Shown: positions 23,816 to 51,673, counted from the stretch's first letter. The stretch: 64,000 bases of DNA from Trichosphaerium sp. ATCC 40318 (GCA_038496445.1 JALMLS010000612.1:744001-808000), one strand, 5' to 3'. Notes: a model not told the origin generated them from the letters alone. Numbers and translations are program-made.

Positions 23816-25282
23816 ATGGCAACCACTAAACCTACTACAAAATCGTTTGGCAAGTATGATAAAGTCCGTGTCGGGTTTTTATGTGCTTCACACAAGCTAG
23901 AGCACATGAAGACAATGTTGGCCGTTTTCAAGGAAGCCTTAGACTTGTAAGTCCCGAATTCACGAGAACACTCTTTTTTGAGCTTAAACGGCATTAAGTG
24001 ATCTAAAATACATACACAGCAGCGACTATATCGTTTTAACGCCATTTTAGGACATACGAGTATTCTTTGATCAAAAAAGCTGACTTGAGCGACTATTTAT
24101 TCAAGAACACTACTCCTACAACCCTTACAGTACTCTTTGTAAAACTACGCAAAGAACTATCACTCCTACCAACCGATAGTGACCAGGTACGCATTATTAG
24201 CCTCATACCACTCCACGCCAAAAGGAAGATCAATTAGAATTTAGTTGTGGATTTAATATCCAATTTTGCTTCTTATTACTAACAACACAACAAGGCGCAC
24301 GCATATGCTAAGCAGCTCATGACACTCGTAGAAAAAGCGGAGCAAACAGAGAACATCATTGTACTCGACCCTGTAGTGCCTCAAAAAACGTTAACGGATC
24401 GTGCAGCATGCCTAGCGTTTATAGAGAAAATTACAGAAGCAGTAAACTCAGTACAAGCGTACAAAGGTAACAACATTCAGAAAATTTCAATTCAAAAAAA
24501 AAGATTGAACTCTTTAACGTCTCATTCTGACTTTACGTATTAGATAATCCGCCATTGGAGGCTCCTGCGTCTGGTGTACTAAGGTCTAAAGAGGAAAAAC
24601 TCCCAAAAGATGTTTCCTTGCCTATTGTAGTAAAACCTCTATTCGCTGAGGATCATCAATGTGGTGTTTTATTCGAAGAAAAAGAAGTATTAACGATAGG
24701 TGAAAAATGGAATTATCCTGTTGTTGTACAAAGTTATGTACCTCATGATTCATTTTTAATTAAATTGACATATATTGGTGGTAAATGTCAGACTGCTTTC
24801 CGTGGTTCTATACCTCTTTTTAGAGAAGATACAAAATCGCCAGCAAAAGGTGATGAAATGTTCACGTTTTTAACGAAAGAATACTGTAAGAGATCACTAA
24901 CGGAGGTACCAACATGCTCATATTTCTTGCAATTTTTTTTTTGCACGTGCATGTGATTCATGGTGGATTTCTGTAGGAGGAAAAAGTTGGTAAATTGGGT
25001 ATTGGTCCTGAGTTAATGCAAACCATTGCAGATATGACTCGAAAAGTTACAAACTGTGCTTTGGTTGGTCTTGACTTGATTTTAAATAAAGATACTGGAA
25101 AATGGGTTATAATCGATGTAAATCACTTCCCTAGCTATGTTGGTGCGTCAAATACAACTCTTTATTTACACCAAGCGTCATTACCATAATATTAATAAAT
25201 GAAATTAGGAGCTAATACAGAGATGGTTTCTAAATCATTTGTGACACTCGTTGAAGAAAGCTTGGCAAAATTCAAACAGTAA
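23816..25282 (+). CDS. ITPK1: Inositol-tetrakisphosphate 1-kinase-like ATP-grasp kinase
   Basis: LPIVVKP, PVVVQSYVPH, LVGLDLILNKDTGKWVIIDVNHFPSY match ITPK1 family motifs. Confidence 0.85.
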
Positions 25283-25468: not shown

Positions 25469-26778
25469 CTAATTCCTATTGATTTTCTTTTTGTACACGA
25501 GTTGAGGTTTATACTCTCCATATATCATTTTCTTTATTGTCCATCGTTCTCTCGGATGACCTAGAGCATGTTGAATGTATCTATAAAAACTTAGCCCAAT
25601 AACGACATGCAGATCAATGTTTACCTAATGCCTTTAATTGTGACATCCTTATCAAAATGGCTGTGTCCGAAAATATGAACTTTCGGGTTGATAGTCCGTA
25701 TCTGTGTCTCTAATCCAGGTGTGCCAACAACCTATACAATGCAAGAAGTTAGAACTTACATCTTTAAAGCTATCATGAACTACCAGAGGAAGAGTTTTAT
25801 TTGGAAGCCAAAATGTTGCTGGTATTAAGTCTCGTCGAGGCAAGAAATGACTGAAAGTTATGACATCCTTTCCAGGATAAGCTTTAACGTGTTCTAAAGC
25901 ACAAAATCAAACACACTATTTCTAGCATAGTACAACAGAACAAGACGTATAAAAACTGTCAATCAAGGAAGGTTACCTTCATTCAAATCCAAAAAATAAT
26001 CAGCAGGTGCATCTGGATCACGATCAATATCCAACTCCTCAGGCCAAACTACGCGTCTGAAACAGCTATTAATGCTAACAAAACTTGTATAAGCTTTCTG
26101 TAAATCAGTACCTAAAGTCAAGCCAGCGGCGCTGCAATGTAAGTTAGGTTGAGAAGAAAAAAAGCAGGTGACGAACTCTGAACGATGTGTCTCCTTTCCA
26201 AGTTTTATCAAGTGAAGGAGTATGCCATGCTATAAAACGACCTTGGTTAGCTTTTATCACGTGCTTGACTAAACAAGGAAGGTACTACCGAACAATGGTA
26301 CAATGACAACACCATTGAATTCTTTTGGAGAGGTGTATACATCCAACTCATCGCACAGTTTAAGAACTGCTTCAAATTTTTCAACTGAGTTTGAAAACTG
26401 GCTTCTGCGCTTTCGCAATCGGAGCTCATTGTTCCCTGGAACAAAGAATAGGTTGCTACAGTACGATTTAAGCATAGTCAGGGTTTCTGAGTTCTGTTGT
26501 TAGCTCGTACAATAAAACTAATGATCACGTACCTTCTATAACGTCCATATGACTAGAAATGTCTCCAGCGAGTATTAAAACCTAATTTTACAGATAAGAC
26601 AATGATAAAAACAGACCAAAAGCCAATACGTCATCAGGGCGAAAATTAAAGCTGCTCATCGCGTTTATGATGTTATAGTTATCTTCCTCGTCAGTGTGAA
26701 TATCTGTTTACAGTTAAACTAGCCAACATAGACTCTAGGTTTACCTGATATTGAAAAAACTCGCTGAGACGAAGCCAT
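25469..26778 (-). CDS. Calcineurin-like metallophosphoesterase
   Basis: SDIHT, LAGDIS, VPGNNE, FSHFLP and FGHSH motifs. Confidence 0.9.
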
Positions 26779-45890: not shown

Positions 45891-46624
45891 GCGTTGCAAC
45901 TTTCGTTTTTTCTTTTTGTTTTTGGTGGAGTGGAGACTATATTCAGTAAGCGGCGGGCATTTTTGTAAATTGAAAGTTATTACGTACTATAGCGCTACCT
46001 GATACCTTTCTACCTCACTATAGTACCTTTAGGAATTGCGCTTACAGAATTCTTCTCCCTTAACTGAGAATTATGCTTAGCTTTGTCTGGTACCGTACCA
46101 TGAAACTCAATATTAGTAGTTCGACTTATAATGTCTGAACGTTAGCTATTTCAATAAGAACTACCTTTGGTTTTTCGAGAAGAGCGAAAATAACTTATCC
46201 AAGGGTGTTGTGACAAAGTAATACCTGAAAGGTTTTCGAAACACTTTGTGCACGAAAAGTGTACTCCACTAATTATTACGAGATTTTGGCGAAATTTGGT
46301 CTTTGTTGATTTGAAATCATCGCTTTAACTTTACCCTTCGCTAGCTATTACATTGTAGACATAAAGAGTTTTGTTTTGGGCTATGACTTGGTCATAAAGT
46401 AAAATAGCTTGCTCAAAGTTGTAGGGCACAATAAATTACGCCATCCACTGCAATATATAGAAAAAAACGGAATTAAACATACACCTCAAGTGAATAAAGA
46501 AAGTTTCAATTGAAAAAGGAAACAATGTCAACATAGCTATTGTACATCTTGTTTTAGTTTACACAACCTGTATTTCCGTCATCTCACTCGTAGTGAAGAT
46601 GAAAGAAAAAAGCATAAAAGGTTT

Positions 46625-48960
46625 TTAACGGCGAAATTTTGGTAAAACTTTTACATTGCCACCTATTGTGTCACTTGGTTTGTATGCTGTACAAGGCATT
46701 TTGAAAGGTGTCATTACTTTCCTATCCGTCACAGAACCAGGTTTAAAGTAAACACCAAGTTCAAAGTTCTTTATCGCAGAAGTGGACGAAGTGTTACCCC
46801 AAGCGCTTAAAAAAAATTCAGAATAAAAAAAAAGTTATTTTGTGGGCTACTGGACGCATAGGTTTTTTGATAAAATGTATAAAATAATACTCTTGATGAT
46901 AGGTCAATGATCTCAAAGATCAAAGATACTCACAAAGCATTGTGACAGAAAGGATTTGATTTGGTTTTGCTTCTTTCTTCAAAAAAAAAACCATGGAACG
47001 AAAATCCTTAACTGCGTTCGTCTTACCTTCTAGTAAAGTTATGAGAACCAATGTAACACCATTGATCTTCATCCGAGCTATCAATGGGAAATATCACCTT
47101 GCTATGGAGTAATACTGGCTTATCGGAAATGTCTTCACATTTCATAATGCTAACAGTGTCAAGTTGATCTCTATGTAGAAAAGCGATTGCATCTCCTTGA
47201 TAAGAGTCAGTTAGATTGTAGTTTACTTATTTAAACGTACCATAAAGCCGTGTCTTTTTAACATAAGATTCAGTAGGATACACAATCTAAGATAAACATT
47301 AAAACTGCAATTGTAACAACTAATTTTTTTTTCACGAATATTTGGAAATAAAATAAAGCTAGGGTAGTAGTACTAGCTTGTAACACCAAATCTTTCGCTA
47401 AGAAGCTGGAACGACAGTCTCAAATAAAAGAGATGAAAAAGAAAGCACTTTCGAGAGCAGAGAAGAGTTTACTTTTAAAAAAATGGTACCTGAGTGTCAC
47501 CTGACTTAACACCGCAAACATTCTTTACAAATGCACGGGTCCAACTCACATTAGCTAAGCTTATTGTATTCGCCTATTATAAATAACAATTAGCTTATAA
47601 AAGCACCAAGAAGTCTGGCTTAAAAAGGTTGTACTTGGTAAAGTAAAGCTGTTGCTTTTGTGCTCTTCTTGTTTTGACTAACCAATTTTTTAAGACGAAG
47701 TGCACCATAGTTACTATCTTTAGTATCTGGTACACTACCCACTAGATTTACTTTAGCCTGAGAAAAATCGTATGTCCTAAAGGAATTCTATTAACAAAAA
47801 CATGCTGGTTTGTGTTATTTTTACAAACGTACTTTAGAAGCTTGAGATGGGATGTAGGTATCTTCATACTACCCAAAAATCGATTTAGGTAGTCAATAAA
47901 TTCGCAAGGAGATGATGTATCTGTTGGAGCACAGCGAGGAAAATCTTGATACCAAAGAACCTTAACGTCAACATCAATCTAAAACAAGCATGTACAAAAA
48001 AAAAAAAGGAGTTATTTTCTCAATCAGATATCACGTGATTTGTATCGTACCTGTCTAAGTTGTTTCCACTCGATACGTGTTAGATTGCCTGACATGATAA
48101 TTACGCGAACGCGACTAGGACAAGATGAACAACCGAAAAGAAAAAAAAAGGTGAGGATAAAAAATCGTACTCTGGGTAAAAAAGAATCAAGAACTTCGAA
48201 TGCACTAATCCCTTTACAAATAATACTCTCCAAGAAGCACTACCACTAACGTGTTTAGGTACTCCCGTTATGCGATTGAATTGTAATTCATCTGTGATGC
48301 CACGAATGATGAGTAAGTCTTCGCTTAAACGAAAGAAACTCTGTAAATCGCGATAATCATCCAGCATCCCAGAGGCAATTGCACAATCCAATTTTTCCTT
48401 TTTAGATTGTAAGAACGCAAGCAGCCTTTGGATAGTATGTTCTACCGTACATGATCAATGAGGGATACGAGATCTAGGCGATTTGGTATTGTTACATCGT
48501 TTTCTCCTATAATATTCATGCAAGGGCCGCTACCCGACCAACAGCGGTTTTCAACCTTTTTTGTAGATTGGCTTGAGTTACTACACCTGTCAGAATTGGA
48601 GACAAGTGTCGTTACGCACGTAAGCTTCGCTCTTTTTGCTGTGGCTGGTGTATTATTAAATTGAGCGTGCTTTTGTTTGCGAATAAGGCGTAATTGCTCA
48701 AAAGGTGACAGCTTGGTAGTTAATGGCTCAATTGGTGGTGCTGTGTCACGTACAGGCACTATACAAATTGTTACATTGTTACACGAATTTGTAGCGTTAC
48801 CGTTATTCTCGTCTGCGAAACTCTCAAGGGATAGCTTTATAGCCTCCTGTAGAGCAGCATCTTCGTTGTCAGAATCAACGAGGTCAATGCTGTAAAATAC
48901 GATTACTTAGAGGTATGTAGGCTGTAATACGCACAAGTTACGCCTATTTACTGTTGACAT
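46625..48960 (-). CDS. TDP1: Tyrosyl-DNA phosphodiesterase 1 (3' end approximate)
   Basis: Two HxK..N motifs (VHSKFLIL..SGNL; LHSKVI..GSHNFT), WYQDFP, SAWG, KNFELGV. Confidence 0.92.
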
Positions 48961-49165
48961 TCTTAACGCGGGAGAAGACAACTGAGTGTTTAAGTTTGTG
49001 CAGTCCTTAACAGTAAATTTTTTGACACGTGATACCTTTCACTGTTTCCATAGCGCCTCCATAAGTTTAACATCCATATTTCAGTGCTATTGTCTTCATT
49101 TTTAGTTGCAAGTGCGAGCAAGTATGTTTGAAACTCAAAAAATTTATATGCTTCGAAATCAACAT

Positions 49166-51407
49166 TTACAAAACTTTTATTCGCTTGCTTGTGAATTTGA
49201 TATTATTGTTCAACTTAAATGCAGCGTTTTCTTTACATAAGAATGGACCTTTACAACCAGCTTGCCTCTTTGTCAGCTTAAACAGTGCCTTTCTTATTAC
49301 TTTAATATCAAGATTTGTGCCCTTCTTCAGATCAGCAAAGTTATGTGTTTCTTCGTCTTCGAATAGGCATAAAACAATCATAATCGAAGTGGTTGTTACT
49401 AAAGTACATTTTTGATTTTGCCCCAAGTCTACCTACAGCCACGAGATGAGTAAAACAAAGAAAACATGCGCAAGAACAAATTCAATGGTTGAAGTCAAAA
49501 AATCATACCTGAATTTCACAGTTTCCGTACTGAGGAACTACACAAGTTTTTCTACCTGCATTTTGATTCTCATAGAAGGTTTTGAACTTATGCCATTGTT
49601 GTGCGGCATACAAGGGAAGTATTGGTTTCGATGCAATCAACTGAAGATTAATTGCAACAGACTTATAAATATTCGCTTCAGAAGTGTCTGTTAGGAGACT
49701 ACCCGCAGGCCACACATGTCCAGTTACAACCACGAAGTTAACAGGTAATTTAGACACACTGCCCTGATAAACAAGTTAATAAACAATAAAGGAGAACCAA
49801 AACACATGACTAGAAGAATTCTTTTTTCATAAAATGGCATGTGCTTTGAAACAAGTACCTTGTATTCGTTCATTGTGTGAGATGATATTACAATATCTTT
49901 ACGCATATCATTCAGTTTGTTGCTCAAACCATCGAAGCCTTCCTAACACAAAGGATTAAAAATACTGTACGTTGTCGTCATAAACTCACACTTTTAAATC
50001 TGTCAATGAAAGCAATCTCATACATTTCTTTGGATGTTCCTTCAAGTAATCTCCGTCCAAAAAAGCTTACGTACTCCGACTCAAACACTCTCGTGTCTGG
50101 CATAAGCAGGACACTTTGTACACTTTTCTGTATGACATCACCTACACGTGATTAAATAGACGTTAATCCATAGTCCGAATAATCCTTACTTGCTTGAGTT
50201 TCGGATAGTTTTTTGAACTGTGCAACAAAGAGATGATGAATATAAACTACAAGGAGTTTTGAACGCTCTCCAGTTGAAAACAAGTATCCAAGCCCTTGAA
50301 CTACTGCATTTCTACAACCTTGTGTATCCCCTGGGCTCACCAATCCGCAAGAATCGAGTATACCGTAACATTCTTGTATCAAGGTAAACGCTTTGTTGAT
50401 GTAATTTACAGCGACCTTGTAAATTGATGTGTCAATATTCTCTTGTATTCAAGAAACTGTACCTGTACGGATTTGGGCTTATCTTTGAGCTCCTCTGAGA
50501 GAGTTAATGCTTTTTGTTTAACGTGCTCGTACAACGCAAGTCTTAGCATACATAAGATACGTCTCTCACTGCATAGACGTAACGCAATCTTACGAATGGC
50601 TATTTGGTGTTAATTTTTTAACAAGTATTTATCACGTGTAGTTGTAACCGTACCTAGCCAATCCTGTTTCTCAAACGAAGTTTCGCAATGATAAAAGAGT
50701 GAATTAGCATGTTGTGCAAGTGCTTGGTTTACTAGACTTTGGACACCATCGAAGGGCCTCAAGCCAACAATTTTTGGTGTGAGCATGCGTCTCATTCCAT
50801 GTGCTTTGTTCTGTTGTACAAACTTGTTAAAAAAACATTAAACTTGAAACTCGTGCCTCCATTGATGTTGTTTTGAATATTGTTTTTTCAAAAGCGTGTA
50901 GTTGTAGCATAAAGTTTGGGTTTGGATCAACTGAAGGCCTTCTCATCTAAAACATGGTAAGTAGTGAGGTATCGCGATAAAATCACCTTGACATGTCTGT
51001 AGGCTTCGGTTAACGAGCATTTCATATTTTTCATTAAATACGCAATTACAATCGATGAAGACCTTGATTTTCCTGATTTACAATGCACTAGGCATCCCAG
51101 GCCTGCAGTTCGAGCTTTTTCTACAAAGTGTCAGTTCAAATAACAGTAAACGCTTACCTATAAGATTACAGCACGCGTCGAAGTACTGGAGTATGTCTTG
51201 TTCTTTTGTATCATATACACAAGCATACATGTACGTAAAGCTCTTAACTTCGCTAAGGAAATGGTTTTGGCATTGAGGGTAGCCCATATTGATAATATAA
51301 CGAATATTTTGTGCTACAAGCTGATCCTTTGCGCAACAGTTATACTCATCGCCCAGATACAAGTTTGGAAGTATGTATGAAGCCGGTGGCGACTCCTCTA
51401 CTTCCAT
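49166..51407 (-). CDS. Dual-specificity phosphatase fused to truncated cullin
   Basis: ILPNLYLGD, VHCKSGKSRSSSIVIAYLM, PNPNFMLQL, then cullin-like motifs VFESEYVSFFGRRLL, KLNDMRKDI, FKTFYENQNAGRKL, FKLNNNIKFTSKRIKV. Confidence 0.75.
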
Positions 51408-51673
51408 GTTAGGCTCACCAAGTACAATACAATCACTTATTCAATAGTAACTTAACGTTCGAACTTGAAACGTGCGCGTCAAAATTTGTGAAATGTCACG
51501 GACAAGCGAGATAGGCAAAGTGTATAAAGCAAACAACATATTAATTTATGTACAACTTGTTGATACAACAGTGCATTATTGGTGTTTTTAGGCTAAATGT
51601 TAAGCATGCTGAGGTGCATAAAACACGCCAAACTGATGTGAGAACAAAATCTTCCTTAGCACTAAAGTGCTGT

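Follow-up and report, generated by a model that had tools for sequence, protein, structure and literature searches.

A transcribed locus of Trichosphaerium sp. encodes a dual-specificity phosphatase part and a divergent cullin remnant that may form a single protein

We describe a locus in a 64,000-nucleotide (nt) stretch of DNA from Trichosphaerium sp. ATCC 40318 (GCA_038496445.1 JALMLS010000612.1:744001-808000), hereafter the window, from whose first letter all positions are counted. On the minus strand, between 51407 and 49166, the locus is transcribed and selectively maintained, and it encodes a dual-specificity phosphatase (DSP) part followed by the remnant of a cullin. Judged from its sequence, this remnant is lineage-specific and very divergent, and it has neither cullin repeat 1 nor the neddylated WHB domain. 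We give about even odds (a probability of roughly 0.5) to the proposal that the two parts are joined by a short phase-0 intron as one protein of 583 residues, or of 585 residues if a GT donor is used.

Reading of the sequence yields 10 exons, from the ATG at 51407 to the TAA at 49168-49166. Once joined, they read through as 583 residues, or as 585 if the candidate joining intron has the GT donor; exons 1-3 carry the catalytic domain of a DSP of the MAP-kinase phosphatase (MKP) type and exons 4-10 the cullin-like region. The RNA evidence comes from three public runs (X1, X2 and X3), each of a different study, whose assembled contigs, at least 99% alike, were compared with positions 48300-52300. 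As these are assembled contigs, holes in their coverage prove nothing and their depth cannot rank parts of a gene. The features of the model are the following.

Exon 1, 51158-51407, minus strand: start ATG 51407; DSP, N-terminal half, with the general-acid loop ..CVYD..; X2 contig 51414-51158 spliced to 51120
Intron 1, 51121-51157, minus strand: 37 nt, GTAAGC..TGTAG, phase 1; joint 51120/51158 in X2 contig
Exon 2, 50987-51120, minus strand: P-loop VHCKSGKSRS and the helix after it; Pfam DSPc
Intron 2, 50947-50986, minus strand: 40 nt, GTGATT..TTTTAG, phase 0; predicted from sequence, outside RNA coverage
Exon 3, 50857-50946, minus strand: C-terminal DSP helix, then a short tail ..KTTSME; reaches 50851 (..MEAR) with the GT donor; outside RNA coverage
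Candidate joining intron, 50811-50856 (46 nt) or 50811-50850 (40 nt), minus strand: phase 0; outside RNA coverage
Exon 4, 50654-50810, minus strand: beginning of the cullin-like region; contains ATG 50795; X3 contig 50654-50756 spliced to 50599
Intron after exon 4, 50600-50653, minus strand: 54 nt; joint in X3 contig
Exon 5, 50463-50599, minus strand: ..LYEHVKQKA..; helical-looking, unrecognised; both joints in X3 contig
Intron after exon 5, 50416-50462, minus strand: 47 nt; joint in X3 contig
Exon 6, 50190-50415, minus strand: ..SKLLVVYIH..; unrecognised; joints in X3, loose end in X2
Intron after exon 6, 50142-50189, minus strand: 48 nt; joint in spliced RNA contig
Exon 7, 49990-50141, minus strand: ..VFESEYVSFFGRRLL..; first segment recognised as cullin; joints in X1 and X3
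Intron after exon 7, 49943-49989, minus strand: 47 nt; joint in spliced RNA contig
Exon 8, 49859-49942, minus strand: ..KLNDMRKDI..; joints in X3 contig
Intron after exon 8, 49764-49858, minus strand: 95 nt; joint in spliced RNA contig
Exon 9, 49509-49763, minus strand: strand VNFVVVTGHVWP and FKTFYENQNAGRK, cullin alpha/beta region; joints in X1 and X3
Intron after exon 9, 49433-49508, minus strand: 76 nt; joint in spliced RNA contig
Exon 10, 49166-49432, minus strand: last cullin segment, ending ..KRIKVL, then TAA 49168-49166; RNA contigs to 49183

Seven of the nine introns of the model, with lengths of 37-95 nt, are confirmed by joints in spliced RNA contigs, so the locus is transcribed and, as far as these seven introns go, spliced as modelled. 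The coding sequence differs between contigs and window at six positions, of which four belong to the phosphatase and two to the cullin; all six differences are synonymous. This is consistent with selection on both parts, in a sample that is small.

The phosphatase part looks active, and its catalytic site is intact. Pfam DSPc matches exon 1 over profile positions 1-66 and exon 2 over 69-111 (E 1.6e-13, 51 bits against a cutoff of 33.5), exon 2 passing on its own. The P-loop motif HCKSGKSRS fits the signature H-C-x-x-G-x-x-R-S/T and aligns opposite HCQAGVSRS of DUSP10, and the Asp of CVYD stands opposite the acid-loop Asp (..VED..) of DUSP4 and DUSP1, 32 residues ahead of the catalytic Cys in the spliced protein. 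An earlier note, made from the sequence of the window, had described an intact DSP with these two motifs, which the profile match and the alignments to DUSP10 and DUSP4 bear out. The closest solved proteins are all catalytic domains of MAP-kinase phosphatases, namely DUSP10 for exon 2 (E 2.6e-10) and DUSP4 and DUSP1 for exon 1 (about 2e-4, or 1.8e-4). The catalytic domain, of about 155 residues, starts at about residue 10 of the open reading frame (ORF), and the 100 nt upstream of that ORF are intergenic; there is no N-terminal rhodanese-like MAPK-binding domain. In its sequence, the phosphatase resembles the catalytic domains of MKPs and not a full MKP. Intron 2 joins ..AYRHVK to MRRPSVDPNPNF.LQL..FE in exon 3, a continuation that would match the usual C-terminal motif of the DSP family. 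This supports intron 2, which the RNA leaves unconfirmed; exon 3 alone has no Pfam match.

As for the cullin part, we scored its exons separately against Pfam Cullin (PF00888, 620 positions, cutoff 33.2 bits). Exon 7 matches positions 395-432 (E 0.14, 11.3 bits), exon 9 positions 476-536 (E 0.0048, 16.1 bits) and exon 10 positions 541-618 (E 1.7e-6, 27.6 bits). Each piece lies below the cutoff; the three are colinear and their simple sum is 55 bits. In a language-model feature search (ESM atlas), the nearest neighbours of exon 10 are cullin/Cdc53 clusters with Cullin_AB, with a top score of 0.97. This family set is shared by 26 of the 40 atlas hits of exon 10, and clusters carrying ANAPC2 (0.84-0.87) rank below the plain cullin clusters. 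The colinear matches and the atlas score uphold the cullin homology proposed in the earlier note. The motifs listed there also lie on the minus strand in the order given, apart from one misread letter, FKTFYENQNAGRKT containing GRKT and not GRKL. In terms of textbook cullin structure, the region matched by positions 395-618 would span the four-helix bundle, the alpha/beta domain that binds RBX1, and the first of the winged helices. Within the match of exon 9, VVVTGHVWP fits the strand motif V-L-T-x-G-x-W-P, which in cullins belongs to the alpha/beta domain and forms a sheet with the N-terminal strand of RBX1. It is this conserved strand motif only that suggests RBX1 binding. The cullin motif F.FY....GRK is present as well.

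The cullin part is about 425 residues long, and its first ~185 residues (exons 4-6 and the beginning of exon 7) come before profile position 395. By eye, they may correspond to repeat 3 of CUL1 and the last part of its repeat 2. The adaptor-binding cullin repeat 1 was not recognisable with Pfam or in the atlas over exons 4-6, in line with the earlier claim that adaptor-binding repeats are lacking. The divergence of the remnant is also reflected in phmmer searches. Exons 7, 9 and 10 retrieved no solved cullin from the PDB, and exon 10 retrieved two low-complexity false hits only from 1.84 billion representative proteins, a library from which the organism's own protein is also absent. Exon 9 found nothing in bacterial and archaeal genomes, a collection unsuited to a eukaryote, and neither exon 9 as protein nor an exact DNA word of exon 3 found anything in the JGI metagenomes. 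An AlphaFold2 model of exon 10 alone, with a pLDDT of 42, was unusable. Separately, the atlas neighbours of exon 10 (49169-49432) include a Cullin_AB cluster, at a score of 0.84, of whose members 55% belong to the Nucleocytoviricota; giant-virus cullin-like proteins may be worth comparing with the remnant.

The frame stops 12 residues past the last matched position (618 of 620) of Pfam Cullin. Canonical cullins run on for about 100 residues, which hold helix 29 and the WHB (Cullin_Nedd8) with the neddylated lysine. We found no Cullin_Nedd8 in exon 10 or in any ORF of the ~260 nt between the stop and the coding exons of the neighbouring TDP1 gene, and a WHB exon downstream of the stop was rejected, there being nothing WHB-like before TDP1. 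Both the absence of a WHB neddylation motif after the stop and the frame end KRIKVL-stop, as first read from the sequence, therefore hold, the TAA at 49168-49166 being real. RNA contigs reach 49183, and the last 17 nt with the stop fall in an uncovered stretch (48890-49182). A consensus-like donor, GTAAAT (49164-49169, minus strand), overlaps the stop in phase 2 and is phase-compatible with a TDP1 exon starting at 48896 (a 273-nt skip). A spliced extension beyond the cullin stop may formally be possible, with no WHB-like sequence there to reach. TDP1 itself shows a weak Tyr-DNA_phospho/PLD match on one exon piece and, by eye, two HKD-like motifs in its translated exons. Its candidate starts, ATG 49075 and ATG 49050, lie about 90-115 nt from the cullin stop.

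Whether phosphatase and remnant form one protein depends on the junction between them. On one and the same strand, only 32 nt separate the TAA of the DSP frame (50830-50828), to which exon 3 reads on if unspliced, from the ATG that comes first in the cullin frame (50795). The in-frame intronic TAA placed at about 50828 in the earlier note is real, and the two joining introns proposed there, 50811-50850 and 50811-50856, are both phase 0 and keep the frame. The donor of the 40-nt intron, GTTTCA, is a poor fit to the local consensus, since every one of the 10 donors confirmed by RNA nearby is GTR, in most cases GTA[AC]G. The 46-nt alternative has an in-phase GC-AG donor shortly before the DSP stop, AG|GCACGA, which fits that consensus except at +2; its length is within the range of the confirmed introns, and a branch-like TTAAC lies 16 nt before the ACAG acceptor (CAG), at typical distances. 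The word GCACG occurs 69 times on both strands of the 64 kb. If the two parts are joined, it is probably by this 46-nt GC-AG form. No ATAAAT or AATAAA follows the in-frame TAA of the DSP for 195 nt. Of three genes in the neighbourhood, two have an ATAAAT close to the 3' end, namely the upstream gene (26 nt before its observed 3' end) and the cullin (19 nt past its stop); as TDP1 has none either, the missing signal is a weak point of the argument.

A GC-AG intron is the best solution at one other place in the window. In a seven-transmembrane (7TM) gene at about 56700-58000 (plus strand), a 55-nt GC-AG intron (57727-57781, donor CAA|GCACGT) joins ..PLQ to GFFIF... The best PDB matches of its flanking exons are TM6 and TM7 of adhesion G-protein-coupled receptors, at E values of about 1 each and as the top hits of both searches, and the in-frame GT alternatives are poor donors that would remove part of TM7. 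From this case, the genome appears to use GC-AG donors. Four home-made statistics on donor use over the whole window (ORF-bridging and branch-site tests, for GC-AG or GTT) did not clearly separate even known donors from background and hence support nothing.

Several observations weigh against the fusion. The joining splice and intron 2 lack RNA confirmation, since both lie in 50757-51086, which is uncovered by contigs of every listed run; a second run search restricted to these 330 nt listed no run. Enumeration of the junction gives several in-frame GT/GC..AG pairs, so that an in-frame solution alone is weak evidence. None of the 10 RNA-confirmed introns nearby is GC-AG, and support for such donors comes from the one homology-supported case at 57727. 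In X3, the contig (depth 10) breaks off at 50756, some 40 nt into the possible separate cullin ORF that starts at ATG 50795. No phosphatase contig is seen in X1 or X3, and X2 alone shows exons 1-2, at a depth of 3.5; the cullin part is seen in all three runs at depths of 4-10. The end of the X3 contig and the missing phosphatase contigs hint at a cullin-only mRNA starting near 50800-50850, of which this pattern would be expected. Genes are also packed tightly here, the 3' end of the upstream gene being at about 51523 and the ATG of the DSP at 51407. Finally, the first ~185 residues of the cullin part are unrecognised, with no Pfam hit for exons 4, 5 and 6 and no atlas match (best score for exon 6, 0.76), and we infer the mechanism proposed below in every functional step.

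Much of this would be expected of two separate, tightly packed genes, a 167-residue DSP ending at TAA 50830-50828 and a mini-cullin of ~420 residues starting at ATG 50795, the splice-like signals having arisen by chance. We regard this as a serious contender that nonetheless falls short of an even chance. The mini-cullin transcript would begin inside the 3' end of the phosphatase gene, which agrees with the stop of the X3 contig and the absence of phosphatase contigs from X1 and X3. ATG 50795 sits five codons past the putative acceptor, and the 167 residues of the DSP are close to the 144-197 residues of solved DUSP catalytic-domain chains. The very small gene spacing nearby, the several in-frame splice solutions that arise at the junction anyway and the misfit of GTTTCA all point the same way. 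However, 32 nt from stop to ATG are too short for a 3' untranslated region, a promoter and a 5' untranslated region unless the transcripts overlap; an in-phase AG|GCACGA is unlikely by chance at the frequency of GCACG given above; and the DSP stop has no ATAAAT-type signal in the 195 nt that follow. A cullin remnant without a substrate-recruiting part also has no obvious way of working as a ligase. Since it would have no visible means of substrate recruitment, an unfused mini-cullin is better seen as a regulator that binds RBX1: most likely it would be an RBX1-binding regulator or sink, or it would have an unknown partner.

The good splice signals and the RNA pattern (cullin part in three runs at depths of 4-10, phosphatase in one at 3.5) would be reconciled if both forms existed: a long mRNA at low level would give the fusion, and a short one, started internally and more abundant, the cullin part alone. 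The short form could then compete with the long one for RBX1. Neither transcript end is directly evidenced, however, and contig depths cannot rank parts of a gene. We consider this explanation less likely than either of the first two, though a real possibility. Less likely by far is a bicistronic read-through RNA that lacks the joining splice and from which each frame is translated on its own; the acceptor-like site ahead of ATG 50795 would then perhaps serve other RNA processing. All genes in 46-52.5 kb are on the minus strand with very short spacers, as such an RNA would have it, but no contig crosses the DSP/cullin boundary, and at the acceptor, a site that itself lies outside contig coverage, the contigs show neither a spliced leader nor a loose end.

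If DSP and remnant are indeed fused, the cullin part would hold a RING protein of the RBX1 type via its alpha/beta domain, through the sheet formed with VVVTGHVWP. Having no WHB, it could not be neddylated, nor be regulated through that domain by CAND1, DCN1 or the COP9 signalosome. Adaptor and receptor would be replaced by the phosphatase, which would bring phosphorylated clients. As the phosphatase is MKP-like, these would most plausibly be activated, MAP-kinase-like kinases. Dephosphorylation and ubiquitylation of one and the same client would thereby be coupled. One may picture a single-chain E3 scaffold, free of neddylation and CAND1, whose active MKP-type phosphatase serves as substrate receptor, dephosphorylating clients and passing them to the RBX1-bound E2; we offer this picture as a speculation that is rather improbable as a whole. 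The protein might also be one of several cullin remnants particular to this lineage in which a targeting domain is fused on directly.

The remnant is like canonical cullins (CUL1-CUL5 and Cdc53) in its colinearity with the last third of Pfam Cullin (395-618), its VVVTGHVWP strand, its F.FY....GRK motif and the atlas neighbours of exon 10. It is unlike them in that repeats 1 and 2, of which the adaptor-binding arm consists, are not recognisable, and in that helix 29, the WHB and the neddylation lysine are missing. It is also too divergent for a pairwise match to a solved cullin, and is possibly fused to a phosphatase. APC2, the divergent cullin-homology scaffold of the anaphase-promoting complex, binds a RING subunit and is not neddylated. 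Nevertheless, APC2 retains a winged helix at its C-terminus (Pfam ANAPC2) and a long arm of repeats at its N-terminus, and neither was found in the remnant. Cullin-homology regions also occur in the multi-domain proteins CUL7 and CUL9/PARC, both of great size, in which the neddylation region is retained and DOC, CPH or RBR domains are present. They provide a precedent for a cullin fused to extra domains, none of which is a phosphatase. On the phosphatase side, DUSP10/MKP5, DUSP4 and DUSP1 are the best solved relatives of exons 1-2, with P-loop and acid loop aligned, the protist DSP differing in having no rhodanese-like domain. In the laforin-malin pair, a DSP recruits substrates for an E3, the two being separate proteins; malin is a RING-NHL protein, and laforin binds glycogen via its CBM20. 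The likeness would be one of function only, with a DSP as substrate selector of a ubiquitin ligase, as malin is not a cullin. Lastly, in engineered cullins, removal of the WHB or the C-terminal tail is reported to free the RING and mimic neddylation. By analogy, a natural WHB-less cullin might behave alike, although the engineered forms are full cullins truncated in the laboratory, their adaptor arms left intact.

On the usual view, a cullin-RING ligase depends on three elements, namely a modular adaptor arm, RBX1 and NEDD8, whose attachment to the WHB activates the ligase. An expressed remnant, conserved in frame, with neither arm nor WHB raises the question of whether an RBX1-binding core can work, or regulate RBX1, alone. 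A full-text literature search for architectures of cullin with dual-specificity phosphatase returned nothing relevant, and one for natural WHB-less cullins nothing specific. Should the remnant indeed be joined to a functional phosphatase, no earlier natural protein is known to us in which dephosphorylation is hard-wired to cullin-type ubiquitylation, and it would provide a natural test of the idea that removal of the WHB makes a cullin constitutively active. If the genes are separate, the finding shrinks to an orphan mini-cullin beside an ordinary small phosphatase.

Some further features of the window deserve mention. Four consecutive frames on the minus strand at 46600-52300, encoding an upstream basic protein, the DSP, the cullin-like protein and TDP1, are separated, from stop to next ATG, by about 30-270 nt. 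Directly downstream of the cullin-like gene, the TDP1-like gene has in its N-terminal region (48801-48895, minus strand) a stretch resembling a ubiquitin-interacting motif, ..DSDNEDAALQEAIKLSLE... At 26230-26264 (minus strand), a candidate 35-nt GC-AG intron (GCACGTGA..GCTAAC..TTTTATAG) lies between two ORFs of what is possibly a BLTP1-like gene, the Pfam hint in the downstream ORF being weak (E 0.13). Another GC-AG candidate, at 24943 (GCACGT), was rejected in favour of a good GT-AG solution with its donor at 24906 and a length of 71 nt. It lies in an ITPK1-like gene at 24531-25186 (plus strand), in which Ins134_P3_kin matches two exon pieces.

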